Shown: piece by piece, positions 23,327 through 52,737 of the stretch
Position numbering within the stretch: the first letter of the stretch is position 1
How the letters are laid out: every line of letters begins with the position of its first letter
NCBI GenBank assembly: GCA_964106645.2
Contig: OZ067043.1
Reading direction: 5' to 3' (one strand)
Length of the DNA: 64,000 bases
Source: Podarcis pityusensis
Lineage: Eukaryota
Notes under the pieces: generated by a model
What the model was told of the DNA's origin: nothing
Database searches by the model: none
Seen by the model: only the letters and a program-made list of their open reading frames with translations
Position numbers and translations under genes: made by a program

Positions 23327-24011
23327 CATCATACTTAACTCTGGGTTTGATTGCGACCAGTGCATTTGCCATTCTTACCTACCTGAAAAGTGATGCTGCT
23401 GTTTAAATTTAAAGATAATAACTGTTGGGTTCAATGAAGTAAGGTTACTGTATTCTCATTTGTGAGAAATTTACTGATAAATTAAGAGTATCTCAGGGTG
23501 CAGCTAAACTTGTGGATTTTGCCTCCGTTTGGTGGCCATCTGTTACTTATATGATAGGCCAATCATAGGGATGGCAAGTCCTAATGAAATATGACTTTAT
23601 TCCTAACATTTGTTTTGTATTCTTTCTGTATCAGGTCATTTTTGTTGCAACATCTAAGTCACTATATAGTCTCTTGAGGATGTATTTTATTTTATGAGGT
23701 AACAGCTGTGAACTTTGGTTTTGTTTGCTGGTTTTGTACTTTGTTCTCTTCTTTTTCACTTATTTTACTTCATATTTCTCACAGGGTTGTTTTTTAATGT
23801 CATAAGAAAGTACTGAAAAGGACAATCCGTGCCTTGTGTTGTGTTGCCTAACTGCTTTATTGCAGAAATGCTACTGATTCCTTTAACCAGGGTGTTTTCT
23901 GCATTGAGCCTGAGACAGGATGAGCTAGAAAATACAACTGTTGAAACCCGAAAATCAATACATACTCTAACTCTTTTATTCTGAAGTTTTGCAGCCCACT
24001 CATTTCCCATA

Positions 24012-24242
24012 CAGTGGTACCTTGGGTTAAGAACTTAATTTGTTCCAGAGGTTTGTTCTTAACTTGAAACTGTTCTTAACCTGAGGTACCACTTTAGCTA
24101 ATGGGGCCTCCTGCTGCCGCCGCGCGATTTCTGTTCTCATCCTGAAGCAAAGTTCTTAACCCGAGGTACTATTTCTGGGTTAGCAGTGTCTGTAACCTGA
24201 TGCTTCTATAACATGAAGTGTCTGTAACCTGAGGTACCACTG
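24012..24242. mobile_element. Tc1/mariner-type MITE
   Basis: CAGTGGTACCTTGGGTTA...TAACCTGAGGTACCACTG. Reverse orientation of the 51054/58523 family. Confidence 0.9.
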
Positions 24243-28345: not shown

Positions 28346-28390
<45 letters not shown>

Positions 28391-28680
28391 TGTTATTTAT
28401 ACCTGCCCATCTGACTGTGTTGCCCCAGCCACTCTGGGCAGCTTTCAACATAATAAAAGCACAGCAAACATCAAACATTAAAAACTTCCCTAAACAGGGC
28501 TGCCTTCAGATGTCTTTAGGAGGTTGTGTTGTTGTTTATCTCTTTGACATCTGGTGGGAGGGCATTCCACAGGGAAGGCACCACCACTGAGAAGGCCCTC
28601 CGCCTAGTTCCCTGTAACCTCATTTCTCACAATGAAGGAACTGCTGGAAGACCCTCAGAGCTGCACCTGTGTCCGGGCCA
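28346..28680 (-). mobile_element. L2-clade LINE 3' end with (AAT)n tail
   Basis: Same family as 59003-59346. Trinucleotide tail 28346-28388. Confidence 0.8.
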
Positions 28681-29298: not shown

Positions 29299-29839
29299 AG
29301 ACCACTTTGCAGGAATTTGGGGGCAGCTAGTGGCAGGAAGGGAGGAAACATTCCTTTCCTGTGCTCAGGAAGCCTTGAAGGGTCTTTCCGGAGACAGGTT
29401 TGAAGCAAACCAGCAGGAGTGAAAGAGCACTGTAATTTAGACTTAATGATGAAAACAGCCCTATCTGTGAGTACACAGAGCCTGTTCACTCAGGGAAAGA
29501 AAAAGGTAATTTCAGGTACATTTTACAACATTTGCTGACAGAACAAAGAAGAAGGTTTATAAGTTATTATCAACGTTTCAAAGTGATGTGGCAAGACACA
29601 GAAAATAAACAAGCAACCAAGAAGAATGAGTAAAGGACGACCAAAGGAAAAAAAGAAAGCATTTCCCTCTTCTCAGCAAATACTAGAGTAACTGGCTAAG
29701 TTTGGAGAGGCCTACAGCTTCTGTATACAATGCACACATGCAGCACTTCATCTGGAATCATTTTATGGTGAGCCATCAGGAATGGCAATGTTATAGGAAT
29801 AACACCTGATAAATGGGGAACTATAGTATAGAACCTTTG

Positions 29840-30870
29840 GTCACATAAAGCATTTGTCATTGCAGGCACCATCCTATACTAGTCAGAAGTCTTAAGATAC
29901 CAGACTGACTCGAGCCCCGTCCAAATGCATGCCTTATTCTTCTTCTCAGGAGTTCAGAGCAGCTTACATCTGGCTCCCAGGTGGACACCTCTTACCCAGG
30001 CAACTCACAGGGCCAGAACTGCTCAGCTTCAGCAGTGGATCTGAATCACATGCCTTAGACTATTCTTGACTCTGCCTGGAAACAAAGAGTTCTGACTCAG
30101 AAGGGTAGCAGGGAGCTTGGGTAGAAGATGCTACACATGATCATAGGTATAAAACCAGTGTTGAGTAAGAGTCAAGGAACACTGCCTCCGATGCTGTGAG
30201 GATTTCAATGCCTCTCTGGCTTTCCAAGACCCTCAAAGGCAGCAAGGGGAAATGGCTCTAAGGGGAAAGAAAGCAGTGATTCATTCACCCTGCCCTGTTC
30301 AGGGCTCGCAACTACTACTTACAGAACCTCTCCCTGGAACTTTTGTTCCTCCTCCACCACTTCCATAAATTACCTTTATATCCCATGCTAGAATTCCTTG
30401 TTCTACCCCCAAACACATAATTGTTAGGTACTGAGCTAGGATCCTAGAATAATAGGCAGGTAGGATCCTAGAATGCAATAACCAGGTTGGCTTGCAGGAG
30501 CAGCCCAATCAGGCCCCAAGAGGAAGTTAATCAGCCTATTAGGTCCAGAGGATCCTAGAATGCAACAACTGATTGACCTGCAGTAGCAGCCCAATCAGAC
30601 TGCAGGAGGGAAGCAGAATCAGCCAATCACACGGGACCCATGGTGTAAATAATGTATATAAAGCCTGAGGTTCTGGGGGGGGGGGGGGAGTCAATTCACT
30701 GTTAAGAGATGCAATAAAGAGCATGAAATCACTACGCGACTCTGAGTATATTTCAATAATGCAAGGGGATCAGGCAAAAGGCCTGTCTACTCCAGCATTC
30801 TGCTCTCACAGTAGCCAGCCAGATGCTTAAGGGAAGTCCACAAGCAGACCATGAATGCAGAAGCACTTTC
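29840..30870 (+). repeat. Inverted segmental duplication, arm A
   Basis: Reverse complement aligns to 50900-52215. Example: 30009-30100 matches rc of ~51945-52035 with about 2 mismatches by eye. Confidence 0.92.
30422..30755 (+). mobile_element. Solo LTR (334 bp)
   Basis: TG...CA ends, perfect TSD ATAAT (30417-30421 / 30756-30760), repeated CCAATC boxes, TATATAAA ~30656, AATAAA ~30713. Absent from the paralogous arm B. Confidence 0.9.
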
Positions 30871-31630
30871 CTCACTTGTGTTGGCCTTTGTGTGGAAAGG
30901 ATGTTGGGCTTGAAGGGCCATTGGCCTGATCTAGAAGGCTCTTCTTGTGTTCTTATGCTCCCAACAGCTGGTACAAGAGAGGGCTGTTGCACTCACAACC
31001 TTTCTGTGGACTTCCCACAGACATCTAGTTAACTACTGTGGGGAACAGGATGCTGTACTAAAGAGACCAGCAGAGCTCTTGGGTTTTAATGCTTCATCCA
31101 AGCATTGCCAAGGCAACTGAGCTAGGATGCAGGGTTTGGGTTTGTTTTTTTCAGTCTGTCATTCATGAAAAGAGAAAGACCCACCTCCACACTCTATAAA
31201 GTATGTTCTCAATTAAAAACTGGTGATAACACTTGAAATGTGTATGCATTTCTAGGAATTAAAGCCACATGTTTTAGCAATTGAGGGTGGCTAGTTTGAA
31301 GCTTCAAAATGCAATCACTTTGGTTAAAATGATAATTTGAGTGTAGACCTGGCTTTCCTAGACCAAATAAGAGCAACAAGCATATCATTTCACAAAGGTC
31401 AGCCTACAAAGAAACAGGAGAAATGTAGGATGTAGATCAGCTGAGCAGCCTTTCTTTGCTTTTTCTTAAAGAAAAGCTGCCATGGCATTGAACTCAGCTG
31501 CACTTTACTGTCACTCAATGTTTGTGCTTGGAGCTTAACCTGAGAAAATGTCTGAGCAAGAATCAAAATTATGAATACTGTCTGATAGCTTTGAGGATTT
31601 CCTTCCTTCCTTCCCCCTCATCTAAGTAAT

Positions 31631-31981
31631 TAAAGGTAAAGGGACCCCTGATCATTAGGTTCAGTCATGACCGACTCTGGGGTTGCGGCGCTCATCTCGT
31701 TTTATTGGCCGAGGTACAGCTTCCGGGTCATGTGGCCAGCATGACTAAGCCGCTTCTGGTGAACCAGAGCAGCACATGGAAAGGCTGTTTACCTCCCCCC
31801 CCCCCCCGGGGATAGCTAATTATCTACTTGCACTTTGATGTGCTTTCGAACTGCTAGGTTGGCAGGAGCAGGGACCAAGCAACGGGAGCTCACCCCGTCA
31901 TGGGGATTTGAACCACCGACCTTCTGATTGGCAAGCAAGCCCTAGGCTCCGTGGTTTAACCCACAGCGCCACCCGCGTCTC
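31631..31981 (-). mobile_element. Sauria SINE
   Basis: Reverse complement of the 14961 copy, with an internal deletion and an expanded C-run. Confidence 0.92.
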
Positions 31982-31989
31982 TTTTAAGT

Positions 31990-32960
31990 ACTTAAAAGCC
32001 TTACTAAATCAAGTTATACTAAGTCCACAGCATCTCCCTGATCCACCAAGCTTGTAACTCTATCAAAAAAAGAAATGGGATATGTCTGGCATGATTTGTT
32101 TTTGACAAACCCATGCTGCGGCTTAGTAATCACGGCATCCTTTTCTAAGTGCTCACAGACATACCGTTTAATTATCCGTTCTAGGATCTTTTCTGGTATT
32201 GACATCAAGTTCATTTTTCCTTCTTTTTGAAGGTGGGGACAACCAGTGGTTTTTTTTCCAGGAGGCACTCAAGGGTATGCAGTACCAGCACTTTTTTTGT
32301 TTGTTAAAAAGTATGGCACTTACTGTAACAACTTCATGGTGAGTACCAGCAACCATTTTTATAGAAATAAAGCACTAGGGACAACATTTGCCTGCCTCCA
32401 TTCTATGGGGACCTCATCTATTCTCCAAGAATTCTCAAAGGTTATAGATAGAGGCTTCACAGGCTCCTTTAGTACTCTTGGGTACAGCTCATCAGGCCCT
32501 GAAGATCTGAATTCATTTTAAGTAGCTAGGTGTTAGCTTACCACCTTTCTTCCTATCTTGGGCTGAACCTCCTTCCTTGCATTGTTTACCCGATTATCAC
32601 CAGAACACTGCTTTCCTTTTGGTGAAGACAAAGGCAAAGTAGGTGTTGAGCAATTCTGCCTTCTCTCTGTCACCCAGTAGCATTTCTCCATCTTCTGCAC
32701 AGAGGACCTACCACCTGCTTGTTCTTCCTCTTGTTTTGAACATAGCAGAAGAAACTTTTTATTAATTTTTATTACTTCTAACCTCTCTCACAAGCCTGAG
32801 ATCATTCTCAGTGGTGGCCCACCTGACTTTCTCCCTGCAACTGTTGGCTCCTAGTGCACTCTTCGTTTGTGATTTCCCCTTTCCCACTTCTTACACATGC
32901 CCTTCTTAAATTTAAGCTCATCTATAAGCTCCTTATGTAGCCACATTGGTTTCTTTGGAT
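31990..32960 (-). mobile_element. CR1 LINE ORF2 fragment
   Basis: Peptide SIPEKILERIIK...QHGFVKNKSCQT...SFFDRVTSLVDQGDAVDLV matches the start of the CR1 RT domain. Degenerate and interrupted by a MITE. Confidence 0.92.
32244..32377. mobile_element. hAT-type MITE nested in CR1
   Basis: Perfect 8-bp TSD GGGACAAC (32236-32243 / 32378-32385). Imperfect TIRs CAGTGGTTTTTT / AATAAAGCACTA. Confidence 0.8.
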
Positions 32961-34443
32961 GCCTTCCAGGGTGGGGGGATGGTTGTCAGAGCTTCCTGTG
33001 CCTCTGCACCCCCATATGACACCTGATTTCAGCTTAACTTCTGCTCAAGTTCTTCAATTTCGAAGTCATAACCATTCTGCTGGTGCATCTCACACTAGAG
33101 ACTTCACTGGTTGTGGCTTATTAGTACACTGTACAGCTTGCCGATATTATTTACACCACATTAAAAAGACTGGACGGCTTTTTCTTGGATGCGAGAAAGC
33201 CTTCATTCCCACTGAAGATTAAACAAGAAAAATCACTTTTGATGTCACTGCAGTGGCAATGATTGTGCATTTGATGTTGTGCAGTAGAATATTAGATTCA
33301 TGCAGAAGCCCTTTCAGTGGAATTTTACCATTCAACTTGTTCCTTCCCAGGTCTTTGCTTTCAGTTGATACAGAAAATAACAGCTGAGAAGTGTAAAGTA
33401 CACACTCTATACACAGATCAATTAGAAATGCCCTCTGATCATTTTGAAAAAGAAAACTTTGAGATATCATTTTCTCCACAATGCAGGCTATGTTCTGGTT
33501 AAGGGGAGGGAGAGTTCTATGTAGACATAATCCTTTACTATACTTTGTTTTTCTTAACCATGGTTAAGTTTTACAGGTGAGTACCTAAACTATGGTCAAG
33601 GGCAGCCTGCAGATCAGTTTTCAATGCCAGTCTGAAGTGGATTTGCAAACCATGGTTCATGCTTACAGTGCTGTGGCTGCACTAAGCAAACCATTATTAG
33701 GCAGTTTTACCTCTTACTCTCTTGCAAAAGGTAGCATGCAGATTACACTGGTTTCTCCTTATATCCACCTTCTCAGGCAGAGCTTAGGTCAACAAGCTGA
33801 GACATTTTGAATCTTAACTTTGATTGGGTGGGGAGGGGGGAATCCACCAAAACCCTGCAGTTAGCACTGGGATGGTTAATATCAGACTTGCCTGTTGGGC
33901 ACATAGCAGCCTGAATAGAGCACTACGCATATGAGTACACATGCAAACATAAAAAGCAACTCATGCAGCCTAGAACAATTTAAGGGGTAAATCCAGACTC
34001 CTGGCAGGCAGCAGATGGTGCATCTTGGCTTGACTGAGTAGGGCAGCCTCCCACTTATACTGGCCTGGGTGGAAGGTGATTTGACAGGGAGAATAACTGC
34101 TTATTTTACCAGCTTCCAAGGCGGCAGTGTAATGAGGCATGGAGTGGGCCTCAGCATGGTCAGTACAAGATCCAGCAGATCCTATGCTTGCCCAGTCCTG
34201 CCCAACCCCTCCCTGCCCCTGGAATGCCCTTTTGGGGACATTTCCACTAGCTATCACTAGTGGGAATGTTGCCAGTGGTAGCTTCTGTCTGCCTGCCATT
34301 TGGGCAGGTACATTGGGGTGTTCCTCACTGGAGGGACTCCCCCACCAATTTTGGCAGCTAGAGAATGGACACCTCCATATAAACCCAACCCCCTCCAACA
34401 CTGTGGAGAGGGAGATGAATTGCTTTGCCTTGCAGCTCTTGTA

Positions 34444-34797
34444 AGGTAAAGGTAAAGGGGCCCCTGACCATTAGGTCCAGTTGTGACCGACTCTGGGGTT
34501 GTGCGCTCATCTCGCTCTATAGGCCGAGGGAGCCGGTGTACAGCTTCCGGGTCATGTGGCCAGCATGACGAAGCAGCTTCTGGCGAACCAAAGCAGCACA
34601 CGGAAATGCCGTTTACCTTCCCGCTGGAGTGGTACCTATTTATCTACTTGCACTTTGACGTGCTTTCGAACTGCTAGGTCGGCAGGAGCAGGGACCGAAC
34701 AACGGGAGCTCATCCCGTCACGGGGATTCGAACCACCGACCTTCTGATCGGCAAGTCCTAGGCTCTGTGGTTTAACCCACAGCGCCACCCGTGTCCC
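34444..34797 (-). mobile_element. Sauria SINE, full length, young
   Basis: CpGs retained. TSD TTGCAGCTCTTGTA on both sides. Confidence 0.94.
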
Positions 34798-36098
34798 TTG
34801 CAGCTCTTGTACTTCTGATCTAAGTTTTCTGTATTTGTTATCTGAACAAGCAATGCCTACCTTCACAAGATCACAAGGAAGCTCATCCTCCCTCTTCTCT
34901 AAGCATAGATATCCAGTCTGTAAAACTGGACCCCAAACTCCTCAAGCAACTGATCAAATGGAATGTAGCATAATGATACTTTATTATAGGGAGCTAAGAG
35001 AAAAATAGATGTATAGATTTCAGAAAGGTTTTTCTTTTTTTTAAGAACACATTTGAAGGGTTTCAGGCTGCTCCTTACAGCCTCATACCTCATAATGGAA
35101 TGTGTGTGACAATGAATCCTCAAGAAAAATTATCATCCTTCAGTGACATAAGCAAAGAAACAAGGAGCCATTTACATTGCTAGAGCATTGTTCAGAAAAT
35201 GATAGGGATAGGGATATAGGCACCATCACCATTCTCTACTGTCACTAGAAAGTACAGCATCAATCTCTAAAGTACAATGAACACTGTGCTATATGAAATC
35301 CATCTTGCAAGAGGTAGCCTTAACTGTGCCAGCAGAAATGTTATAAGCGAAGCTCTGCAAAATTAGAAAACTTTGCATAAGGTCATGGTCTCAGATAGCA
35401 GATAAACCTTGTGGCTAGAATGTACTAACTTTTGGATTTCTTTCCTTTGCGGTGGAGACAGGGAACCATACTGCATCTATTTCACTGTCTGTCTGCATTC
35501 TATTATCATGTTGTTCCAAATGGTTTTTACGTAAATTTATTATTGTGAACCATCCTGGGCTTCCTTTGGGGACGAAGGGTGGTTTATAAATGTGAAATAT
35601 GCAAACAATGAACAAACAATAGTTGAATAGTAGAGCACGCGCTGTGCATGCAAAAAATCCCAAATTCAATCTCTAGGTAGGGCTGGAAGAAACCCTGATC
35701 TGAAACCTTGGAGGGCCACTGCCATTAGTGTACATAATCCTTAGCAAGATCATTCAGTAGTTTTGACCCAGGCCATAGGCACACCATTCATTTAGAGACC
35801 TCTATTTCCCTACCAGAGCTACAATTCCCAGATTTCCTGTGAAGAGAGATTCATTGATAAACCACTCAGGGATTTGTAGTGGCCTCGGTATAAGGTAGCT
35901 TGCTATGAAATTATTGGATTTTTGGAGCCTACATTTGCAGGGGCAGGGAGGGTATACACCACTTCTGATGAGCGATGTTGCCAAATTCCCTGTTGTTTTC
36001 TTCATCCTGTAATAAACAAACATGCTGACAAAAATGCTCCATATTTCTAGTGCTTAGTGTGCAAAGTTTGCTTCAAACATCCCACCATTTGGAGAAGG

Positions 36099-36281
36099 CA
36101 GGGGTGCCAACTTGAATAAAATATTGTGGGGGCCCAAGTAAGCCCTGCTCCACATAATCAATCACGTGATGCTGTGCACACACACCATTTGAATGGGAAT
36201 GCCCATCAACTTTGTTAGGGCCCAGCCCCCCTCAAATATTTTATTGTGGGGGGCCGAACCCCTCCCCCACGGCCTCCTATG
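36099..36281. mobile_element. hAT-type MITE
   Basis: Perfect 8-bp TSD GGAGAAGG (36091-36098 / 36282-36289), CAGGGG start, internal inverted AATAAAATATT motifs. Confidence 0.82.
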
Positions 36282-39200
36282 GGAGAAGGGAAAGCAAATG
36301 CTTATTAACAATGAGATCTGCCTTTTTGTGCACATGTTGTGTAGGCCTGCCATGTATTCCTTTGGAGAGAATGAGCAAAAGCTTGAATATCCTCCTTGGC
36401 TACGGGGAGCCTGTCAGTCTCTCACCAACCATAATTGCCACCTGATATAACATTTGAATGCTGCAGCAGTCCCACGACCTAGCTAGTTTTGACTCTCCCA
36501 CAGCACCAGCACATGCCAATTAAGTTTCTAGCCCTGAATTTTATATGAGCCATGGAACTTGAAACCTGCTCTCTTGTCTTTCAGCTTCCCTTTCTTTCCC
36601 CATCCTACCAATCAAATGGCTTTACACCTACCCACCCCCGTTGCTTCACTAACAGGTCAGTCAGTGTTCAGACAAAAGGACAACACAACCAGCAGAACTT
36701 TCAAAAAGCTGGTAGATAATAGATGAAAATCCACTACACAGGGGGCTGGCCCAAGACATTGTGTGGCCTGAGGCAAAGGACAAGATGGTGCTTCTTCCCT
36801 TTCATGTCCATGGGAAGGGCTATGGCTCAGTGGAAGAGTACATGCCTTGCATGAAAAGGCTCCCAGGTCGCCTCACTCAGGCTAGAGAACAGAGTTGACA
36901 GATCAACAGTTCCCAAAAAATGGGCCCTGCAGGCCTATAATGCCTAGTGGGTGGATTATCAGGATTCTAAAATGTGGAAGTCACATAATATTCTATGTGG
37001 ATGAAAAGAGCAAGAGAACATGAAAATAAAGGCTGCCATTGGCTACTAGCCATGATGGCAATGGCCTGCCTCTGTGGTCAGAGGCTGTATGCTTCTGAAT
37101 ACCAGTTGCTGGAAACCACATAAGAGGAGAGTGTGTCTTGCATTTGAGTCCTGCTTGTGGGCTTCTTACAGGAATCTGGTAGGCCACTGTGAGAACACAA
37201 TACTGACCTAGATGGGTCAATGGTCTGATCCAGTAGGCTCTAATTGTGTTCTTAACAAGGAACAGCCATCATTTGGCCAACACAGCACTATGCATAGGCA
37301 GCCAATGGTGAGCAAGTTCCCCCCACCCCCGCCCAGTCTGATGACCAAATTCCTCCTGGGAATCCTTTAAGGTTTAGGACTAACATAACACGTGCATATA
37401 CATATAGGTATGTGGTTGGTTTATTAAGGAAAAATCAGGAGGGTTCAAGATTATGAGGACATGACCAACAGCATATCATAGCTAACAGGAGATAAGAACT
37501 CACGACATAAGCAGCAGCATACCAAGGTGCATATGAAATGCTTTGCTAACACTTCAAATATAAAAATGGATGAGCACCAGGTTTCAATAGCTAATATGCT
37601 TACATTATGGATTTCAGCAATAAAATGCTTAGCTAAGGAAGCATAGCTTGATGGATGTCTCAGATAGACCAGCGGAACAAGGCCAGATACTTGTGTATTT
37701 CAAGGAAGGATGAAGTAATGTTCTTGTCTGGGACAGATAGCAAAGAACTAGGTGAAAGCGCTTTGCCAAGAGACTAATGGGGCGTTTGGGAGCCAGTCAG
37801 AAAGAGACATGCAAAGTTGGATGGAGATAAGGACAGGGGATAAAAGGCTATGGCTGGTAAGGTACAAGAAGTTGAGATTTCTGCCCATAATGGTGATAAA
37901 TGAGTAATAATGACCACATAAAGATGTATGTAGGATCAAATGCAACAACTGCTGTGCCATCATAAGTATTGGGTTGGAATTGTACCAGCACTACTGGATT
38001 TCATGCCAGCAATGTTACGAGTGCAGCAAATGACCCATCTGCCACATGCAGCACAGGATTTTTGCATAAGCTGATGTCAAAAGCTGAATGTGGGCAAACC
38101 AAGGGCAGGACTCAGAATGCCTTGTTTATGTGCCTCTCATTGGGCCTTTGCTGATTATCAAAGACAGAGCTAGGTTGGTTCTACTTGCTATGTGCAAAAT
38201 TAACATGATCTCGCTTTAGTTGAACTCCACCTGTTGTACAGCAACGTAGGTCTAGCCAGGATGCCAGAACAGCTGAATCAATGGAAGCAAATTGTAGCAG
38301 AGTTTTTAAACTTGCAAGTTCAAGGCAGCTCACTGGTTACACAGATCCACAAGATCTGGGTGTTCAGCAATCGTATTTTAAGTAAATCTCAGAGAATTTG
38401 CTTTTCTTCCTCTGACTGAATCATTGTTAGTTGCTCTCTGTGTTACAGAGTGATGTCTGGTGTTGCCAGTCTAATGCTATGGAATACTCTTCCAGCAAAG
38501 ATTCAGCAGGCATCCCCCATTTTGACTTTTAGGCATCTCTTAAAGACCTTTTTATGCCAGAAAGCCTATGCCGTTGTTTAAAATTTTCTTGTGCAGCCAG
38601 TGATTTAAATCAGTCAGTCATTTTATTTGTATGCCACCTTTCCAAAGTCAAACCATGCTCAAGGCAGCTTACAACATATGAAAAAATCACACAACTGCAA
38701 ACATAGCAAAAGTAATCATAAGCAACAAACAAAACATCAAAAAGTACACATCCAAACAGAACAATTTACACATAAATCCTAAGATCCTATTTATATCTAT
38801 AGACAGATCTATATCTAGATATATAAAAATAGAAGCAACAGCAACACCCCCAATAAAAAAACCCTAAACTATACCTCACCTTTGTTCTAAACTGCTTTTA
38901 ATGGTTTTTGATGTGTTTTTTCTTGCGGCACACTGCCCTGATATTTTATGAGATGGTAGCATATACTATAAAAGCAAATAAAGCAAGTAAGAGTTAGTCC
39001 TGAAGCCCAAGACCCCTGAAGTGATCATGATGACTTTCCTTGTGTTCAAACAACCTTGTTATCAGGCCTCTCAAAAGTAATAAAAGCAGACCCTGTATAA
39101 TGACTGTGTTAAAAATTTAGGCCACAGCAAGGGTGCAGTCAGACATGGGGATTATTGTGTTAAGATTTCCTGGCTATAATGCTAGTGCTTCTGTCCCAGT

Positions 39201-42200
39201 TTCTAACATTCCTTTTACACTGCCTTACTTGTTGAGTTATGGAACAGCGGCTTTTTGATCCGTTTACCACCTTGATTCTATATCATGCTTAATTTCATTT
39301 ACACCAGTGGGCATGGCATGATAGAACAACATACATCATTGGGCATGGCATGCTTTCACCATTTATGCACATGTGTGCTTCTTTTCCCCAATGACTCATC
39401 CATGAAAATGGCGGGAAAGAACTGTATGCTGGAATACCACCCCAGTTTTTGTCAAATGAACAAGTGGTGAGATGATCCATGAAAGTGGGGAAATTATAGC
39501 ACATAACTGCAGTTTTCCAGGTTAATGGGGTTGCAAACAGATTCCCCCCCTAAAATCAATTAACATGACAGTGAGCTATTGTTTCGTTTATTTTTACATC
39601 ATGTATTTTTGTTTTTATACTGTAAACCACACTGAGATCCTCGAAAGAAGGGTGATATATAAATAAAAAATAAATAATAAAAGATTCTGCCAGGTTTCCA
39701 TAACACCAGGTTTTTTACGTCATGTAAAAGGTAACATAAAGCATGATAATTGTCAGATAAAGAAAAGCTGGGGAAATAGAATAAAGTACTGTCTGAATAC
39801 AACCTAAGACATCACTGCTGTCATCTGTCAGTGAACAAAACTTCACAGAACCATAGCAATTTATGTCTCAGAAAGATTCTGACAATCATTCACTAACATC
39901 CTGTTCTGAAGAAAAATCATAATTATTCAAACTCAACTAGCAGAGGGGAGGACGAGGGAACAACCCACACACCACAAGACCTCATTTGGACCCCTTGTTA
40001 GTTTGGACACCGTGGCTCAAGAATTGTACTGAATCCTTCTGCCCCTAGTCTCAATCTGTAAGACAGAGGTGGGGAACTGGAAGGCCAGATTCTGACCTCC
40101 CTCAAGCCCCACAAGCTACTTTCATGTGTGGGTAGGGCTGCCTATCTGTGAATCATGACACCAGGTGAAAGCAAACTGTTTGAGGGTAAAGACACAGGGC
40201 TTTCCAGAAGCTGATGATCAGCAGGGCCTGAAAAACCCGCTTTCAGCAGGTAGCCATGACTTCACCTAGCAGAGATGGGCAATAAACCTTGTGTTTCCCC
40301 CCAGAAAAACTATCTGTGACAAAGCACGCCAGGTGAACACTTGAAACATCTTGAGGGGACCACCTGGCCATTCAACTTCATGCTCAAAGGATGCACCTTG
40401 TCCCCCTTCCCAAAGGCAAAACAACAGCAACAGCAATCCTACTAGAGCAGTATTGCAATGGACGAGCTGCTCATTGTATGATGCAGATTCCATTTTAAGC
40501 ACTTTTTAATTGTCATTACTAAAAACAAAGAGAAGAGTCAACATATTTCCAATAAAGGGTAGAACAGGTATCTAGCATAAGTGCTTCTGGCATAGATGAG
40601 CCATGGGGAACCTGTACTCCTCCAACTATTTCTAGACTCTCCTCACCCCTGAACACTGGGAAACATCTGGTTTCCTATCCTCAATATAAAGCATTCTGTC
40701 TCATGACACAGGGGGAGACTTGACAACCTATTGTGCTATCAAACTTGGTAGAATGTATTTAAAGTCAATAATTTATAGCTTGGTTTGTGCACGGCACGGC
40801 ACACACAGAACAGTTCTAACATGACTGCTCAGAGGTCTGCCCCACTGATTGCAATGAGAATTATTCCCAGGTAGGGATAGGATTAGTCTTAGGCATCAGG
40901 CACATTCTTCTTTGTTTATCCTGGCATTTTAACCTATGCAAACCGACTATTTTGAAAGATCTTCTCCAATGCATTTATTATTATTGTGTATTATTGTACT
41001 AACGTGCGTGTGAACCCGTGTGTGAATAAGCAAAAGCAATGGGCCAAATCTTCCACTTCTGCCACAAAAAGAAACTTCTTAGCCCCGTATGATATGCCCT
41101 AGGTTAGAGGTGTGGAACCTCCAGACCCCACAGGCCTAATCAGGCTCCCAAGACCTGCCCATTTGGCCCATGAGGACATGTATGGCCTGCCCTACACCTG
41201 ACATCATAGCTGGCATTATGCCTTCACTTGTGGCCCTGTGGCATCCCAAAGGGCAAGAAGGCCTGCTTCTTATTTAGTTCAATGCCTCTCTCTTCTCAAG
41301 GGTTTCCAAGGGCTAGGCGAGGTCAACAGCTAAAGATGCCCTGCAACATGCACATGCCCTGCAAAAATGTAACCATCTGCAAAACCATAGCTGCTTAATG
41401 TCAACCTAAGCAGGAGTTTTAGTGTTTTTGAAAAGCCTTATCAACTATGATTCCTATATAGGGGAAAAGGCAGTTCCTTCCTCTAGAAGGCAGAGATACT
41501 AGATTTAAATCTAGTAAGCCATACCTTTAAGTGTGGCTTCTTACATGCTCATGACTTGACAGCTACAACATCAAGTGACAGGTTGCTTGTACGAGACAGC
41601 CATCCCAGCACAAACATCACAGAGTAGAGATTGCACGTTGTTGAATCTCAAACACTGTATGGAGGCGATTGATGCATTGAAGTGAGAGTCCCTGGATGAT
41701 AAGAAGCCACATGATGATGAGCTATCATATGATGCCTCTGCAGGTATGAATCAGCTATTCTCCGATTCAGTTTTAAAATGAATGACACTACATGCTACCA
41801 TGGCTGATTAAGACAGTGATTTCAAGACAGTCTGGGGCACTCAAATCATTTAGTAGACTACAAATGGACTACAGCAAGTAGCAGTTTTAAGATTGCATAA
41901 ATGGGGGGGGGGGAAACCTTCTACAAACCCATTTATGTTTTGGCTTATGTGAATTAGTGTGTATCACCCATGCCTGCTCATGAAGCAGTCAAGTGTAAAA
42001 GTAAATCCACATTCCTCAATTTATTAAGGCTACTGAATACTTAGAAGTTACTCATTATCTCTTTCACCACAATCATCTGTAATCTAGTCTTTTGTAAAGC
42101 ACCCAGAATGCAGTTTCTGTAAGATAGCCTTCTGCAGCCTGGTGCCTTCCAGATGTTTTAGACTCCAGCTCCCATCAGCCTCCATGGTTTTGCTGTCAAT

Positions 42201-45200
42201 TGTAGTCCAAAATATCTAGAGAGTCAGAGGCTGGGGAACGCTGCCTTCACCAAGTACAAACCTGACCTTCTAATTAAAATATATAATTCAGACTTGAAAC
42301 CTTAGATATCACAATTCACCTGAAAGCATAAGAGCATTAAATGCATAGAAGGAAGAAAACAGCTAGAGCAAACTATCCCACTCAACAGCAGTGTATTCTT
42401 ATGCAACAGAGAGATCAACTTAATCATAGATGACAACTTCTGAAAACCTTTGCTTTGAATTCATCCCTGGCATTTTTCTAGGCCAGCTTGAAAACAAAAG
42501 CTTTGTCTTCTTAAAATGCAATAGCCTCAGGCATCTTTGCAAAAATAAAAAAGTGACATATCTCAGGTCTGGGGGAAAAAGTCTGTTCCTGTTGCCTTTC
42601 AGCATCCCTCTAAAAGCTTCTCTCTACAATTTAGCTAGATTCAGATTATCCAGATCAGCATGAATTCTACAGATTAACCTACTCCTATAAATATAGGTAT
42701 GAAAAGTGTAGGTTTAGGATTACATTTTAACTACCTCATTACAGCTTTATGGGTTGGAAGAAAATCGCTCGTTATTAACCCAAGACACTTTTGCCTAGCG
42801 AATTTTTATGAATTTAGAAAGCATTTGCTGTGGCAATATATGTGAATGTTACATCTATTCAGCTCATTATTTCAGACTTTGCTCTCCCCTCCCCTCCTGG
42901 GCTTGCTTATATTGCACTCTTTCCATAACTATATTCTCCCCAGCCTATCCACACACTATTTTCTAATGCATGTCCAACAAAACTGCATCCTGTGGACATG
43001 CAACCTGTCTTTAAGCCTGAAATAAAACATCTCTTGAGTTTCTTTCCAAGTTGTGGAATAAGCTCCTGCACATGTCAGCTTATTTCTTGAGCTTGGAAAT
43101 GAGGACCTTTGACTTTAGTGACCAACAGTGTTTACTGAAAGAACCCTATAGAACTTGCGTTTACTATTTAACTAAGGATGGAACCAATGAAATAAGTTCT
43201 ACCAACGAATAGCAAAAAAGAAATGGCATAGAATTACAAACTTCGCTCCTCCCTGTCTCCCCATATATGCAAAATTAATGATTATATGTTGACACGTCTC
43301 TTAACCATGATTGATGCTAATCAAGATCATCAAGACCATCTTGATCAGGATTTAAAAATCACCATTAACTATGGCTAAGGGATAAGTTGTTTAGGTTTAA
43401 TCTCAGATAAGCCACTCTCTCCATCCCACCCTCTCATGTTGTAGATGAATGAAATTCTGCCTATCAGGGAAGCTACTGTGATTTTACACCCAGAAGCCAT
43501 TTCCTCTTACAGTCTCAATTTAGTTGCTGGTCTGGAATTTCCAAACACAAATAATCATCATGGGATACAGATCAAAATGTTCTGGTTCCATTATTGAATT
43601 GCTTGCAAACTGGTCAGTAAAAAACACCCTTGCTGGCAATGCTTGTGTCTCCTTTCTCTGAACAGCTAAAACTGTCCAGTTTTCCTTTCAAATAAATGAT
43701 CTCCATCAACAACACTGATCTTCCCTTCATGTTCTGCAAAGCAGAGGGCCTGTAGCTAAGGTTTTGGCTGATGAATACACCCACCCACACTCCACTATGG
43801 GAGTATGTCCTCATCCTCTGTTGTGTCTAGGGATGCCCACACATTACATTCAACAAGTGTGACCTCTGTACTTGTGCGCTTAACAGTTGAGCTGTATAAA
43901 CGTGTACACAGAAACGCCTGTGTACGTGTAGAGACGGTTTGTATCCGTGCTCAGTGTTAAATGTGTGACTAAGCTCTCATTCTCTAGTTCCTCTTCCTAA
44001 CCCTCACCTTCCAACCCAAGTGTTTCCCTCTCCATCTTACCATCTTTTTCCCCTTTCATCCCTGCACATCCCCCTCTCTGACGCATTTGCTATTGGTGGC
44101 AAGTCTTCCCGATCATGAGAACAATGCAACATAAAACACTCCTCCCCAACCCCTGCCTTGTTATCTGCCTTTTCTAAGGCAACAGTCCTCATAAGGCTCC
44201 CCCTTCCTTGTTTTGCCGTTCCCTTGAAATCCATCTACAACTTTTATCTTGACGGTCAGAGCCCACATATATCCTCCAATGGGTTTCAGTTGGGCAGCAG
44301 AGGAATATTAGTCTAAGGTATGTGCCTCAATGCCTTACATTCTAACTAAGCCCGATTTTTCTCTTCAACAAAAACATCTATAAATATGAATAATACCACT
44401 GACAAGCCACTATTGAGAGCGGGTAGCTTTTAAGAGACTCTAAAGAGCTCTACTCTTGCTCCATTACTGTGATGTTGTCTAGATTTTTCTCACACAGCCT
44501 GAACTCCATTGCCAGGGAAGTTATTTTCTTCACAGTTCTTTAAAAATAAAAATAAAAATGAAGCAGTAGCAAGAAAACCCTGCCATGTAAGATTTTAGTT
44601 CTGTGTATCCTGCTTCTCTACAGCCACAATGGGCATGTTCCAGCCAGTTATGAAGATTGAAATCCTACTGATTGCTGTATGTATTTACCACTCCCCACAC
44701 TGGAATCAACAGATCTCAAAACTGCTAAACTTTTGATTGGATTGAGCCCGATGGGTGCTGCATTTCATTGTCTTATTACAAAAGTCCTGTACATGATGCT
44801 CTTTTAAAGGGGGAGGGAACCCCAACCCCTGTTTTTAGAAACTGTCCCCACAAAAAAGCAGGCACAACTCATCTTAGAAAGGTAAATGCAACAGAACAGT
44901 GAAATCAATACTTTAAAAACAGAAAGCCACCATTCCGAAACATCCTCTACGCAGCCCAACCTGCAAACCAGTTAAGCTGAAGTTTAGGGATTTAGCTCCA
45001 ATGAATTGGTTTTTAGCACGTAAGCCTGGCCCCTGGAGCTGTTTATTCTACACTGATTGCAATGCCACACTTGATGAATCTGACATATTTAGAAATGGAT
45101 GCATAAGCTCACCACCTGCCTTTCACAGCTTATTTGGTTCAAGAGATCATGCCAACAATGCCCTGAATTTGCTTCTCATCTCCAGCCCCCAACCCCTGCA

Positions 45201-47929
45201 ATATTACCCCATATTCATGGGACTTCAAATGGCACATACATTAAAAGGAAAGTCGCTTTAGGAAACAGCATGTTTGATAACTATACATTTTCAAATGCAC
45301 ATCCAAGGATGCTTCATCACAACCTATTCAGGAAAAGTACTTGCAGAAACAGGAGCCTTTGCCAAGATGGGACAGCATTTAAGGTCAATTAAAAGGTGAT
45401 CATGTTGCTAGAAGGAGCAGAGGTGTTGATTAATGTACTGAGAAGTATTTGTATGATCACTTGTAGTGCATTCCAAGTATTGTGCTTTTAAATTCTACGT
45501 GTTTCTTTTGTGTGTGTTTCTAAGTCACCTTGAGGCATTTTGTGTAAAGTTTTTAGTAAGTAAATAAATAACTAAGGTTTGGGAGCTCAATAGCAACCTT
45601 GAATTGTTCACCTCTCTAAGGGGCAGCAGTGCTGCACTAGCTCAGCTGGTTGAGAGACGTATTAAACAGAGCTCATGTAATCTTTACATGTCTAAACAGT
45701 ACTCCATTCTGAAGTGGATCAAGTGTGCTACTGCTGGGGTGCTGGGTTTGACTGCGAAATCTAGATCCAAACATCCTGCAAAATTCAGTGCAAGGCTCCG
45801 GGCAAATTCACTACTTCACAAGGCTGTTGCAAGACTAAAATAATTCTTTTGAGCTCCTTTACGGAAGGGTGTAATAAATGTTCTAGATATGTCAGATTAC
45901 TCACAACAGCAAACCTTCCAGTGGAGCCAAAGTTTCTAAGCACTGAATGGAGGCATTTTGCTTTGGGGGAAAAACAAGCATGGAGTCGTTTTGTATTTTT
46001 TAAGAGCTCAGATCTGACTGCTCGCCATCCTATATAATGCATGTCCCTGAACTGCTGAAATCAGTAAGAAGCGTGTTTCTAGGAAGCAATATGACATTCC
46101 CACATTGATAGGCCAGTGCAGTAACTACGACGACGTTTGATTTAGATGTGAGAGGGCAAGGTTCAAATCCCAGCTCAGTTCATTGCACAGCCTTGGGCAA
46201 GTCACTAACTCTCAGCTGCACCATCTCGAAACCCAGTGAAGGTTTCTAAAGAGGACTGAGGATAAAGGGAACTGCAGTGCACTTGTGTACTGAAATGCAC
46301 TTTTAAAATAGTACTAAGCATGCACAAATGTTTCCTGCTGAAAGAAACCTAAGCAACATAGCAGGATGTGTGGAGGGGCAACAGCTCAGTGAAAGAACAC
46401 GTGTGTGGCATGCAGAAAGTCACATGTACTGCCAGTTTAAAAGACCAGGTCACAAGTGATGGAGGAGGGCAGCCTCAGAATAGATCATACTGGGCCAGAT
46501 GGACAAGTAATCTGACCTAGTATAAGGTGGCTTCTGATGTTCTTATGATAAAACATGTGTTAAACTTATCTTGCTACGTTAGCTCTTGACTGCTATCCCT
46601 TATATATACATATCTGACAGTGACCCAGAGATCAGATCATTCAGAGACTATTCCGGCCACACTGGCACAAGACCAAGCTTAGGAAATTATCCATCCACCT
46701 AGCTCAGTATTGTTTACACTGGCTGGCAGCAGATCCACAGACTACAAGCAGAGGTCTCTCCCATTCCTGCCTGGAGATACCAGCAACTAAACCTGGGACC
46801 TTCTGCATGCAGGACATGCTCTAGCACAAATCTGGAAATCTCCCCCGATGAAGAAAACTTAATCGAATGCATTTTAAAAATTGAGTAAGGAGATTCCCCC
46901 CGCCCCAGCTGCCCCCTGCACAACAGTGATCTACAAATAACATTTGCAATGCAACCATCAACAAACCTGTCAGATATCATGGACAGAACACTGGTCATAT
47001 AATTTATGTCATAAAGAAGCCAACACACGGACATCAAATACACTTCACTGGGGAGGGGTTGACAACATATATTTGGACTGTTTTTATTTATTATTACCAT
47101 TATTATGAATTTTGGTGCTTCTCCAATAGAGAAAGGGATTTGACCTATACTTTGGGTTCTCAGAGATTCAGAAAACTTTTTTCCTTTCTGAGCACCTGGC
47201 TATCTGTTGGCACAGTAGCACCTCTGGTCTCTTTGCCCCTTCCAGACGCTCCGTGGGACTTAAAACAGGTGGAGGGTATTGACGTAGTACAAAACGTATT
47301 TGAAATCCAATTGGGAAGGAACCATTTTTAAAAGAAAAAGGAAAAAAGATTTCATTTCTGACAGGCATGTCCAATTCCTTTATAAAACAAAACAAAAAAA
47401 AAGTCCAAGAAAGTGGTATATCATTCGGCAGACACAAGAACTATACCCTTTTTTGTAATAACGAAGAAAGGGGGAGAAAACACTTAAAAGTTCAAAGACC
47501 AAAGAAAGAAAAACACGCACATTAGGCAAACATTTGAAGAAGGGAGAAAAAAGGAAAATGGGTGTGTGTTTTTTTAATTTGAGCAGAGGAGTGCATAAGA
47601 CAAGGTTGCAAAAACCAGAACTAATTGTTGTAAAGGAAAAAACAGAAGGGGGGTTAAGCAAAAGCAAAAAAATAGTTTAGGGGTGGGGGTATAGGAAAGA
47701 GAGCCAAAAAAAGGGTAAAAACAGCTGCTAGACCTCACACTGCAAGGAAAACAAACGAATAACAACAACCAAGAACAAAACAGGTAGTGTCTCTTTTTAA
47801 AAAAAGAAAAAAAGAAAACCACAACCAAAAAGTAATTCATTATTCATCTTATGTTGTCAATTTGAAAAGAACAAAAGGGGGGAAAGCAGTTGGAGGAGGA
47901 AGAGAAGAAGAAGCGGGGGAAATACTCAC

Positions 47930-48220
47930 CAAGCAAGAAAATACTCAGAAGTAAAAATGTCAAAGAAGGAGTGAGTGAGAGACAGGGAAGGAGGAAAGAG
48001 TGAGAGAGCCACCAGCACAGACAGAGTAATAGCCCAGAAGCAGCAGCCCGAGCTACCGCCGGGTTCCCGAGCCAGCGCCTAACGCCAACTCTACCGAGCT
48101 GCGAGCAAACTGGCAGAGCTTAGAGTCCGAGCGCTAAGAGTCCTTCCACCAGAACGCACCATTGCGACGAGCGAAGGGGGGGAAGGAAGCGATCACAACT
48201 CGACGGTCTCCCGGCTTATG
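47930..48220 (-). other. Putative first exon of an unidentified gene (5' end uncertain)
   Basis: Minus strand reads ...TTTTCTTGCTTG|GTGAGTATT (plus ACTCAC 47924-47929) at the edge of the CpG island, followed by a very U-rich intron start. The TSS position is a guess. Confidence 0.65.
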
Positions 48221-48600
48221 CGCCCGAGAGCGCGCCAAGCAGCCACCCCTTAAAGGCTCTCGAAGAGAGGGAAGGGGGATTTTGCTGGAAAAGCCGAGTG
48301 CCGCCGAGCAGAGCTGGGGGGAAAGGCTGAGGCTCCGGTTTCCCCCCACTCACTCCGGTGTTTTTGGAAAAGTCCGCTCCTGGAGGTAGCGGGCTGGGAG
48401 GAGGGAAGCGAGAGGTGGAGAATCGCTTCTAATCGGCGCTTGACTGTTCTCAAGGATGTGATCCCCTTAACGAAGCGGTGCAGGCATAGTTCCGACGATC
48501 CTGGCTGGGTCCTCCTTTGCTGGGGGTGGGTGGATCTTCGCCAGACGTGGGGCTTGGTGGTGGTGGCAGGCGGGGCCGGGTGCCTGACAAGCAGGATGGA
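48045..48600 (-). promoter_or_regulatory. CpG island / putative promoter of a minus-strand gene
   Basis: Only extended CpG-dense, GC-rich, non-repeat stretch in the window. GC-box-like GGCGGGGC at ~48569-48576. Lies directly upstream (minus sense) of a consensus splice donor. Confidence 0.8.
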
Positions 48601-49824
48601 TGAGATTGATTCTGTGCAGTAGACAGCTGAACGCAGCAAATAAAGGGAGCTGATGCAGAGACGGGCAACCTGTGGCCCTCCAGATGTTGTGGAACCACAA
48701 CTCCAGTCGCCGCTGGAGTTGGGAGTGCAACACATCTGGCTGGCTACTTGTTCCCTATCAGAATCATAGAGTTGGAAGGGACCACGAGGATCCTGCCTAT
48801 CCTGGTGTATTAAGATTCTGTCTGTGCAAAAGGAAGTTCTACTGCATTCAGTGGGGCTTGCTCTAGGTAAGTAGTTATAGAATTGTGGCCCGAATGAGAC
48901 TGCAAAAGATGCTTTGATGCTGTAACCTTCAAGTGCTTCTTGGGTATCTTCTTCTATAGCAGCGGTGGGGAGCCTGTGGCCCGCCAGATGGTGGTTGGAC
49001 TACAACGCCCATTTTCTCTAACCATTGACCATGCTGGCTGGGGAAGATAGGAGTTGGACTCCAACAGTATCTGGAAGGCCGCAGGTTCCCCACCTGCAAA
49101 GTGGTGTGGTGAAGCCTGCAGTGTCTCTGATGCACCCATAAATATTCTAAGCAAAGTTCAGGTTTGCTAAAAACCTTGATGAGGAAGTTAACTGGTGAGT
49201 GAGAGAGAGATAGGCAGGAGAGTTCTCAGAGCATCGCAAATTGGCAGTTATGGGCTAAACCATGGTGGTAATAATCCCATGACAGAAGTTAAAGTCTCAT
49301 CCAAAGAAAGGCTCGTAAAGTCAGTTTAGTATAAACCAACAGGGAGTCGTGGCTTCGACAAGCCCAAGCCCATATGAAATCAAGGTTTTTTAAGCATGTC
49401 TAATGCTTAATCTATTTACTTATTTAAATCTAATTAGTTAAAATTAGGGGTGGTGGTGGCTTACAACAAAAATATGCAGACAAAACACATACAACACATA
49501 AAAGTAACCCTATCCTTTAAAAACACGCAACACAACAAATCACTGAATGGAAATTACTAATAGCAGCAGCAATCAGGTCTCTCTCTTCCTTCAAAGGCCT
49601 GCCAGAAAAGAAGGATGCCAAAAACTAAAGGGAGATGGGGCCAGACACACCTCTTTCAGGAGGTGGGGTTTGACAAGAGAGGAGCTGCCATTGAAAAATC
49701 TGTTTCCTGGTCCCCAACACCATGCCACCAGGAGGGTCTCATTTGCTGATTTGCTATACAGACGTGGATAGGAACTTGCACAACTGCTCTCTGGCTAGTA
49801 ATGAAGCATTTTGCTAGTAATGAA

Positions 49825-50210
49825 GCATCTCACTCTCTCATAACACTAGAACTTGTAGACATCCGAAGAAGCTGAACGTTGGAAGATTCAAGACAAATAA
49901 AAGAAGGTACATCATTAAACAATGGAATTTGCTCCCACAGGAGGCAGTGATGGCCACCAATTGGATGGCTTTAAAAGAGGACTGGACAAATTCATGGAGG
50001 GTATTAATAACAACTGATAGCTATGTTCTACCTCCACTGTTGGAGGCAGTATGTTTCTGAATGCTAGTTCAGGAGGGTAGAGAGTGCTGTCACAATCAGG
50101 CCCTTCTTATGGGCTTCCCATGGGCACCTGGTTGGCCACTGTGAGAACAGGATGCTGGACTAGATGGTCCATTGGCCTGATCTACAAGGGCTTAGTCTTA
50201 TCTTCTTATT
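49825..50210 (+). mobile_element. CR1-type LINE 3' end
   Basis: GGATGGCTTTAAAAGAGGACTGGACAAATTCATGGAGG, then 3' UTR. UTR-only relatives near 9780-9960, 15550-15730 and 37030-37253. Confidence 0.8.
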
Positions 50211-51053
50211 GTGACTCATGATATTGAGCTGGTGCACCAGAACACTAAGACTGTCACACAAAGGCAGAAGCTGAAAGTAGCATAGCTGTGTCTGTTAACT
50301 TACAACTTCACATTATTAGTGAATTTAGCTGGGTGCAGAAAAGGAGGGGGTGAACTTGGAGAGGGAACTGGGCAACAATCTTCAAATTCCTATCAACACA
50401 GACCACTTTGAACCTGTGCAACACAGAGCAGCTGTAAAACATGAACATGAAGTGCCCAAGTCCTTATTATTTCAATTGGATGGTCCTTTCCCCCACAGAG
50501 CTATCAACCACCAACCATCAGCAGCAGTCTCCAAATAAATAGGCTCCCTCTGCCTGGAAACAAGCTATAGTTATCACAAAGTTCTTCCTCTGCAAGTGTG
50601 GCGCTTAGCAGGCCAGAACTTCTGCTTCCTCCAACAGGCTTCTGTTCTCCATGTAGACATTCCTTTGGTGGAGCCAGTATCCATTCCATGGGAGTTGGCA
50701 GTAAGGAACAGCAAGGACCCAGGGACGCCTGAGATATCTTCTGGCTTCCTGCTTCTACAGGGATTGGGAATATGCGGCCAGCTAGGTATTGTTGGATTCC
50801 AACTCCCATCAGCTTCTGCCAGCACAGCCAATGTTCAGGGATGGTGGGAGTTGGAGCCCAACAACTACTAGAGTTAGATAGATCCTCTGTCCTTGCGTTA
50901 GGAGTGATCTTATGCTTGTGCCCTGATAGTGGGCTTTTTGTAAGCTTCTGACTGGCCACTGTGAGAACAAAATGCTGAACTAGATGGGCTTTTCGACAAA
51001 TCCTGCAGTGTGTTTTCTTACAACAGGGGATTCTGGCATAGGATATAAATGTA

Positions 51054-51298
51054 CAGTGGTACCTCGGGTTACATACGCTTCAGGTTACATACGCTTCAGG
51101 TTACAGACTCTGCTAACCCAGAAATAGTACCTCGGGTTAAGAACTTTGCTTCAGTATGAGAACAGAAATCGTGCTCCGGCGGTGCGACAGCAGCAGCAGG
51201 AGACCCCATTAGCTAAAGTGGTGCTTCAGGTTAAGAACAGTTTCAGGTTAAGAACAGACCTCCTGAACAAATTAAGTACTTAACCTGAGGTACCACTG
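51054..51298. mobile_element. Tc1/mariner-type MITE
   Basis: TIR CAGTGGTACCTC, TA TSD. Empty TA site in arm A at ~30371. Confidence 0.92.
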
Positions 51299-51392
51299 TA
51301 GTTTATTAAACTGGCTGGGGAAGAATGAGCGTTTTGCGGAGAGGTTCAGTAAGTTGTAGTTGCGAGCCCTGAACAGGGCAGGGTGAATGAAT

Positions 51393-51766
51393 TGTTAGGA
51401 TATTTCCGTTCCACCTTAAAAGGGAGCAGGCTTTGTGAGTCACACAGCCTGCGTATTTCCTGTTTCACAGGATGTTTCTGTTGTGTCTTTGTTTTCGCTC
51501 TCTGTGTCCGAGACACTGAAGCTGGCAGTCATGTTTTCTTTGTTCTGATCAACGCTGAATAAAACTTGTAAATAATGCTCTCCTGCGTGCATCTTTTGCT
51601 GTGCATTATCTGCTGATAGAGCGTGCATCGGCTCTGGAATGTGGCAGGCTATTTCTGGAGCTCATGTCGCTAATTGCTGATACTGTATCTACGGGAGATC
51701 GATGGATCGTCCGGAGGCGACTTGTGGGGCCATGATGGACTTTGTCTCCCTGGCAGTATCCCAACA
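51393..51766 (+). mobile_element. Solo LTR (374 bp)
   Basis: Ends TGTTAGGATA...TATCCCAACA, TSD TGAAT/AGAAT, AATAAA ~51558. The empty site GGGTGAATGAATCACTGC is present in arm A (rc of ~30273-30290). Confidence 0.88.
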
Positions 51767-52737
51767 AGAATCACTGCTCTTTTTCTCTTAGAGCCATTTC
51801 CCCTTATTGCTTTTGGGGGTCAGGTAAAGCCAGAGAAGCCTTGAAACCCTCACAGCATGCCAGGATTCCTTGATTCTTCCTCAACACTAGTTTTATACCT
51901 ATGATCGTGTGTAGCATCTTCTACCCAAGCTTCCCGCTCCCCTCCTGAGTCAGAACTCTTTGTTTCCAGGCAGAGTCAAGAGTAGTCTGAGGCATGTGAT
52001 TCAGATCCACTGCTGAAGCTGAGCAGTTCTGGCCCTTTGAGTTGCCTGGGTAATAGGTGATCTCCTGGGAGCCAGATGTAAGCTGCTCTGAACTCCTCAG
52101 AAGAAGAATAAGGGATACATTTAATAAGGACAGGGCTTGAGTCAGTCTGGTATCTTAAGACTTCTGACTAAGAAGTATAAGAGGGTGATTGCACTGAAGG
52201 GTGCTGTATATGATTCTACACTCAGCCTGATTCCAGGGCAACATAAAAAAGTCAGCCTTCTATGACTTGCAGCTTTTAGCTTTTGGAATGCAAACAGGAC
52301 TCACCAAATGGGATAAATTATACAATCAACATGCCTTCAATCCAACCCAATACACTCAAGGGATGCAGGGCATTAAAAGAATGTGGTTTAGCCCAGGCAG
52401 CCCAGTTGAGTGTGTCCAAAAGTGTCTGTGTCCAAATGCCAGAATTCGACTCCTGATGCAGTAAAGCAAACTGTTTAAGTCTAGTTGTCTTTGTTTCTTT
52501 ATCTGGTCAACAAAGCAGATTTTGTGCCTGCTGTGCTCCAGACTTTGGATGCTATGCTGTGCCCCCAAAGCAATGAACTGCATATTAACACCAAAGAAAT
52601 GTATAATAAACTCAATGCAATAAATTCAATAAATCAAAATAATATAAAACATCAGTCACCAAATACCCACCAATCACACTGGATATACATTTGTGACTTG
52701 TGTTCATGCTTACATCACAGACACAGCTCCTCAGCGT

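Follow-up and report, generated by a model that had tools for sequence, protein, structure and literature searches.

An old, decayed inverted repeat pair around a CpG island in the lizard Podarcis pityusensis

Where two inverted repeats enclose a promoter-like region, it can be asked whether the DNA between them is able to flip, and how the two repeats came to lie there. Vertebrate genomes contain many inverted repeat pairs that have diverged, and one of these occupies the middle of a 64,000-nt stretch of Podarcis pityusensis DNA (assembly GCA_964106645.2, contig OZ067043.1), hereafter called the window. Two homologous arms face each other there in inverted orientation across about 20 kb that includes a CpG island. 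An earlier note, made from the same letters, saw in this arrangement a potentially flippable cassette, an inversion switch or the scar of an old event, and took the arms to be duplicated genomic DNA. As judged from its sequence, the pair today is an old, decayed relic whose arms have diverged too far, and been broken up too much, for recurrent inversion by homologous recombination. The origin of the pair is harder to settle. An ancient local inverted duplication of ordinary genomic DNA is the explanation that we favor, with a probability of roughly 45%.

The window contains no runs of N and no masked letters. Self-comparison with blastn returned an inverted match between 29841-30282 and 52213-51768 (86.5% over 451 columns, E about 1e-151) and a second inverted block, 30279-30333 versus 51392-51338 (96%), that continues the first. 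A separate repeat search of the window gave 92% over 262 nt for the same match. After three insertions private to one arm or the other had been excised, a single local alignment placed 29825-30875 collinear with 52222-50897, with 676 aligned pairs. The arms and the DNA between them are as follows.

29825 to 30875, plus strand: left arm, 1051 bp, of which 339 bp are a private insertion counted with its duplicated target site; limits from local alignment to the reverse-complemented right arm
50897 to 52222, minus strand: right arm, 1326 bp, of which 375 bp and about 265 bp belong to two private insertions
30876 to 50896, no strand: spacer, 20,021 bp, defined by the arm limits

Overall the arms are 84.5% identical, and the longest identical tract is 47 nt, ending at 30055. 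The inverted repeat had previously been placed at 29840-30870 and 50900-52215, and these limits were right. Its arms were said to measure about 1 kb, which describes them as they stand (about 1.05 and 1.33 kb) but not the sequence they have in common, because later insertions inflate both. The ancestral unit would have been about 0.7 kb long, of which only 450 nt is well preserved. No further collinear inverted homology was found within 5 kb of the inner and outer flanks, apart from one copy of a common repeat (28363-28475 versus 52879-52762), and a larger ancient inverted duplication was rejected on this ground.

Identity is distributed very unevenly along the unit, which divides into two parts.

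29880 to 30333, plus strand, aligned with 52170-51768 and 51392-51338 of the right arm: core, 91.5% identical over 449 aligned nt, Kimura two-parameter distance (K2P) 0.09
Outer 55 nt, 30334-30421 and the inner piece derived from a CR1-type long interspersed element (LINE): rest of the unit, 70.5% identical over 227 aligned nt, K2P 0.38

The contrast between core and rest is highly significant (Fisher p = 7e-12), and the transitions are sharp, with identity dropping from 96% to 54% at 30333/30334. Each arm has also been interrupted independently of its partner, by elements that include candidate solo long terminal repeats (LTRs) and a short interspersed element (SINE).

30422 to 30755, plus strand: solo-LTR-like insertion, left arm only; 334 bp, TGTT...TTCA ends, two tandem units of about 80 bp, a TATA box and AATAAA
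51393 to 51767, no strand: LTR-like insertion, right arm only; 375 bp, TGTTGGG...CCTAACA ends, 4-bp target duplication ATTC
About 51048 to 51312, no strand: SINE insertion, right arm only; family copies at 24010-24252, 58533-58760 (92% identical) and 63857-64000

The left-arm element is framed by a perfect 5-bp target duplication, ATAAT, at 30417-30421 and 30756-30760, and it is absent from the right arm. The left arm, in turn, runs uninterrupted through the site of the 375-bp insertion of the right arm. The three private insertions, with intact target duplications, show that the two arms have had long separate histories.

The inserted elements have some features of their own. The left-arm solo LTR carries enhancer-like tandem units at 30462-30539 and 30549-30627, CCAAT-like boxes, TATATAAAG and AATAAAG, and it looks young relative to the arm that hosts it. 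The element at 51393-51767 resembles a second solo LTR, and no similarity between the two is detectable.

Can such a pair still turn its spacer around? Its general form, inverted homologous arms around a unique spacer, is that of substrates for inversion by non-allelic homologous recombination. In published experiments, intrachromosomal recombination fell 20-fold when the uninterrupted identity was shortened from 232 to 134 bp. The minimal segments for efficient non-allelic recombination have been put at 134-232 bp in mitotic and about 300-500 bp in meiotic cells, at near-perfect identity, and the rare events that use less than 50 bp occur between close repeats (PMC2583991). The arms fall short of these lengths, with a longest identical tract of 47 nt and 91.5% identity in their best 450 nt. 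At least eight other inverted pairs of transposable elements (TEs) in the window have comparable properties (135-362 bp, 74-91% identity, identical tracts of 14-60 nt), and the arm pair is therefore no special recombination substrate.

Given also the three large private insertions, the proposal of a flippable cassette or inversion switch is not supported. At the present divergence recurrent flipping by homologous recombination seems very unlikely; a rare inversion event between the arms is conceivable. The strongest form of the proposal is that the arms go on flipping the 20 kb between them, promoter included, whether as a polymorphism or as a switch, and that the core is the footprint of ongoing exchange. 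We consider this highly improbable. The inverted geometry around the CpG island would suit it, and so would a divergence that is four-fold lower in the core than at the edges, as if exchange homogenized the center. Yet 38 differences are scattered over the 449 nt of the core, three insertions of 265-375 bp have not been homogenized, and near-perfect identity over at least 134-500 bp, as needed for efficient recombination (PMC2583991), is missing from the arms. Identical tracts of comparable length occur in at least eight ordinary inverted TE pairs of the window.

The inverted repeats at FLNA-EMD and in the F8 intron on the human X, classical cases of inversion by recombination, have arms of 1-11 kb that are more than 99% identical. 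The lizard pair is like them in that an inverted pair surrounds tens of kilobases including a promoter. It differs in having arms of 84.5% identity with identical tracts of no more than 47 nt, far under the minimal processing segment (PMC2583991), and three private insertions. The FLNA-EMD analogy drawn in the earlier note thus fails on both identity and tract length. Another comparison is with inverted CR1, SINE and LTR pairs that arise by chance. The length, identity and spacing of the arms are within the range of the eight or more such pairs of the window. The arm pair differs from these in its mosaic make-up with a CR1 insertion junction inside it, in having just two copies in the window and in its strongly uneven identity. 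As it stands the pair has little importance, since a rearrangement of the promoter by it is not to be expected, and the well-preserved core is its one mildly unusual feature.

From its outer to its inner end the unit consists of a palindromic piece, a middle segment and a fragment of a CR1-type 3' untranslated region (UTR).

29832 to 30148, no strand: weak foldback-like palindrome, the outer ~320 nt of the arm; the high-identity block begins within it and extends beyond it
30405 to 30421 and 30761 to about 30893, minus strand: CR1-type 3'-UTR fragment of the left arm, 5'-truncated and split by the solo LTR, with its 3' terminus towards the core
50897 to 51026, plus strand: CR1-type 3'-UTR fragment of the right arm, 5'-truncated, with a junction to the non-CR1 flank at 51020-51048 as in the left arm

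CR1 insertions are described as heavily truncated at the 5' side, whereas a hairpin and an octamer repeat are conserved at the 3' side (PMC4316615). Besides the fragments that form the inner ~130 nt of the arms, the window has at least six CR1 copies (9752-9962, 15528-15714, 37076-37254, 50028-50209, 30880-30957 and 30972-31080), and the arm pieces were aligned with the first four of these. The window copies have a common end with the tandem octamer TCTTATGT-TCTTATG(G) and an opposite end of variable length, and the inner arm pieces combine the same octamer-bearing 3' end with 5' truncation. The alignment thus bears out the earlier statement that a CR1-UTR piece is present in both arms in like order and orientation. 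In both arms the CR1 3' terminus faces the rest of the unit. Because this terminus points into the arm, the arm is not a CR1-tailed SINE, and that candidate was rejected. Just inside the inner limit of the left arm, CR1 3' ends are clustered at 30762-31090, where three fragments differ in orientation: 30405-30893 lies on the minus strand, and 30880-30957 and 30972-31080 lie on the plus strand.

The palindrome at 29832-30148 is weak, and it is not terminal to the unit. Its alignment with its own reverse complement scores 42, versus 17.3 +/- 3.4 for shuffled sequences, and a direct-orientation match links the arms (30065-30141 on the left, 52136-52214 on the right, E 1e-5). RNA folding of the arm palindrome gave z-scores of -1.8 and -1.1, hardly better than shuffles, and a functional hairpin RNA was rejected for this reason. 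About 250 nt between the palindrome and the CR1 piece have no match elsewhere in the window, even by permissive search. A 5S-like piece had been reported in the arms. Rfam scans at E <= 10 that covered either strand of each arm found no 5S rRNA match, so this report could not be upheld and an origin from a 5S-derived SINE was rejected. At gathering thresholds Rfam returned no matches in the whole window, and a weak match to a plant snoRNA (E 0.03) was taken as chance. No conserved open reading frame (ORF) was found in the arms: stops interrupt every frame, and none is better preserved than identity alone explains, so an exon or other coding sequence in the core was also rejected. A 77-amino-acid open frame of the right arm had no match in predicted-ORF databases, but a control ORF containing a common repeat was equally matchless, so that the first result says nothing about copy number.

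Evidence for a single origin comes from the junction at the CR1 3' terminus. The non-CR1 sequence next to this terminus is alike in both arms, with 24 of 29 positions identical between 30376-30404 and 51048-51020. This flank has no other match in the window at up to 7 mismatches, and the flanks of the other six CR1 copies are unrelated. The junction formed when a LINE inserts is specific to a single insertion event. That both arms have this CR1/flank junction in common argues for descent from one arrangement copied as a unit, and the junction points to one ancestral genomic segment, not a simple transposon.

Copy number and structure are in keeping with this. Even a permissive search of the 64 kb finds just two copies of the core, and the known TE families of the window have 3-7 copies. 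No TE hallmarks (target-site duplication, terminal repeat, tail) were recognized on reading the arm ends, where target duplications may have decayed at this age, and coding capacity, another structural feature of TE families, is likewise missing from the arms. Two larger candidates were rejected as well. The arms are not the LTRs or terminal inverted repeats (TIRs) of a 22-kb transposon, as no target duplications were seen and the ten longest open segments of the spacer gave no sign of transposon genes. Nor do they belong to a giant TIR transposon of the Polinton/Maverick type, which would carry genes such as those for integrase, polymerase B and capsid between its repeats: the ten longest open segments of the spacer have no Pfam match at E <= 0.1, the outer flanks have no direct repeat, and the spacer contains a host-type CpG island and ordinary TE copies.

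Several observations weigh against a duplication of ordinary genomic DNA. All the remaining repeated pairs of the window are interspersed repeats or TEs. At 59-70% identity, the left and right CR1 pieces are no closer to each other than to unrelated copies of the family, and they have three exclusive states in common, compared with 0-5 for other pairs. With no excess of common states, a sister relationship of the two CR1 pieces was rejected, which leaves the 29-nt flank and collinearity as the basis for a single origin. The arms begin and end close to the borders of TE-like components, as they would in a composite mobile unit, and collinear homology stops there instead of continuing into either flank. 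Finally, the four-fold gap in divergence between core and edges requires an additional assumption. A single copying event predicts a uniform age. Therefore the core was held similar by conversion or constraint, or the arms are mosaics of repeat subfamilies, or the edges are older. Gene conversion is inefficient between sequences that have already diverged. The high-identity block ignores component borders, starting within the palindromic piece and ending within the unique piece, which fits conversion or constraint overlaid on an older duplication.

Many of these same observations are what would be expected if a low- or mid-copy, unclassified composite repeat had inserted twice independently, by chance in opposite orientation 20 kb apart, with the uneven identity reflecting subfamily mosaicism. 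This is a serious contender, although we put it below even odds. The unit is discrete, about 0.7 kb long, with flanks lacking homology and both limits at the ends of TE-like components, and its CR1 pieces have diverged like random family members. Other repeated pairs of the window are interspersed repeats of like length and identity (for example, 31631-31983 versus 34447-34799, 84.5% over 362). Against this reading, only two copies are present in 64 kb, even at low stringency. The arm ends, on reading, have no target duplications, terminal repeats or tail, the inward CR1 3' end has the wrong orientation for a CR1-mobilized SINE, and a transposed unit should have one uniform age, not K2P values of 0.09 and 0.38. 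The earlier claim that the arms are a duplication of genomic DNA and not two TE copies gains from the CR1/flank junction found in both arms, but a low-copy composite repeat stays nearly as likely. The suggestion of a scar of an old event fits the observations.

An improbable route to two copies would be retrotransposition of one arm by CR1 machinery. LINE 3' transduction, in which sequence downstream of an element is copied along with it, is well described for L1. Here a read-through transcript of a CR1 and about 580 nt of downstream flank would have been 5'-truncated and inserted in inverted orientation 21 kb away. The order on the CR1 strand (CR1 fragment, CR1 terminus, common flank) is that of a 5'-truncated LINE fragment and its downstream flank copied jointly. 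The homology stops at the right-arm CR1 end and the left-arm CR1 is seemingly about 15-20 nt longer, as expected of a source and its truncated offspring, and the divergence of the two CR1 pieces equals the pairwise divergence of the family, which would date the event to the family's active period. However, the CR1 reverse transcriptase is thought to recognize the hairpin and octamer of its own 3' UTR, so that priming beyond this end would be unexpected (PMC4316615). The outer ends also have, on reading, no tail, poly(A) signal or target duplication, and a preserved core would go unexplained.

On the reading that we favor, local inverted duplication, the history of the pair may be sketched as follows. 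An ancestral piece of ~0.7 kb would have joined a degraded foldback-like segment to about 250 nt unique within the window and to a CR1 fragment truncated at its 5' end. We infer that, long ago, a single copying event gave this piece an inverted counterpart nearby. The copying could have proceeded by a template switch during repair or replication, by templated repair insertion, or as a by-product of an old inversion with staggered breaks. Afterwards each arm would have received its private TE insertions while the edges drifted to about 70% identity, and the 450-nt core might have been held at 91.5% by past gene conversion between the arms or by selective constraint.

One of these routes has a precedent. 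In the Drosophila melanogaster group, inversions that arise through staggered breaks are born with inverted duplications of the breakpoint sequence (Ranz et al. 2007, PMC1885836). The lizard pair is like these products (PMC1885836) in having two inverted copies of an ancestrally single-copy, non-TE-like sequence at the ends of a segment, with no pre-existing repeats required. It is unlike them in size and content: the fly duplications often include genes, and the lizard unit is 0.7 kb, noncoding and very old, and a former opposite orientation of its spacer is hypothetical. As a local duplication, the pair would have the geometry of a staggered-break product, and a templated repair insertion is equally possible.

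It seems rather unlikely, although it would matter more, that the core has been kept alike by selection, as a mirrored regulatory element around a CpG-island promoter, or by gene conversion over 21 kb, or alternatively that the pair records a vertebrate staggered-break inversion. Conservation of the core in both copies across squamates would speak for a pair of mirrored regulatory elements around the promoter. An outgroup with a single arm and a reversed spacer would make the locus a dated example, from a vertebrate, of inversion by staggered breaks.

The candidate promoter is represented by a feature within the spacer.

About 47800 to 48700, no strand: CpG island, GC 0.51-0.61, CpG observed/expected 0.67-0.84 versus a window mean of 0.22

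By composition scan this is the sole non-repeat island of the window, in agreement with the earlier note. The same source had placed the donor site of a first exon here. Donor-like GT sites occur on both strands at the edges of the island, but no coding exon or ORF of coding character was seen in the window, and the exon-1 donor could not be confirmed. The ten longest open segments of the spacer had no Pfam match at E <= 0.1. Directly upstream of the island, 47300-48000 is strongly purine-rich and A-rich (AT skew 0.29, GC skew 0.20), with donor-like GT dinucleotides at the border of this stretch (about 47929 on the minus strand and about 47971 on the plus strand).

Other repeats in the window deserve brief mention. 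A CpG-rich repeat of ~360 bp is present in four copies (14960-15320, 18513-18757, 31631-31983 and 34443-34799) that are 81-91% identical, and two of these copies account for the remaining CpG-island-like windows of the composition scan. Near the inner limit of the right arm, a palindromic repeat resembling a miniature inverted-repeat transposable element lies at 50785-50869, with related pieces at 48978-49098 and 23208-23328. It has weak, sub-threshold matches to several microRNA precursor models on both strands (best E 0.007, 30 bits versus a gathering score of 90), most likely because a foldback repeat mimics a microRNA hairpin. Copies of a further repeat at 28363-28678, 52762-52879 and 59003-59299 contain in translation the motif '...LWNALPPDVK...LKAALL', a motif that would belong to a reptile LINE/SINE tail, at its 3' end. 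Two of these copies, at 28363-28678 and 52762-52879, lie outside both arms and are inverted relative to each other, which is probably a coincidence.

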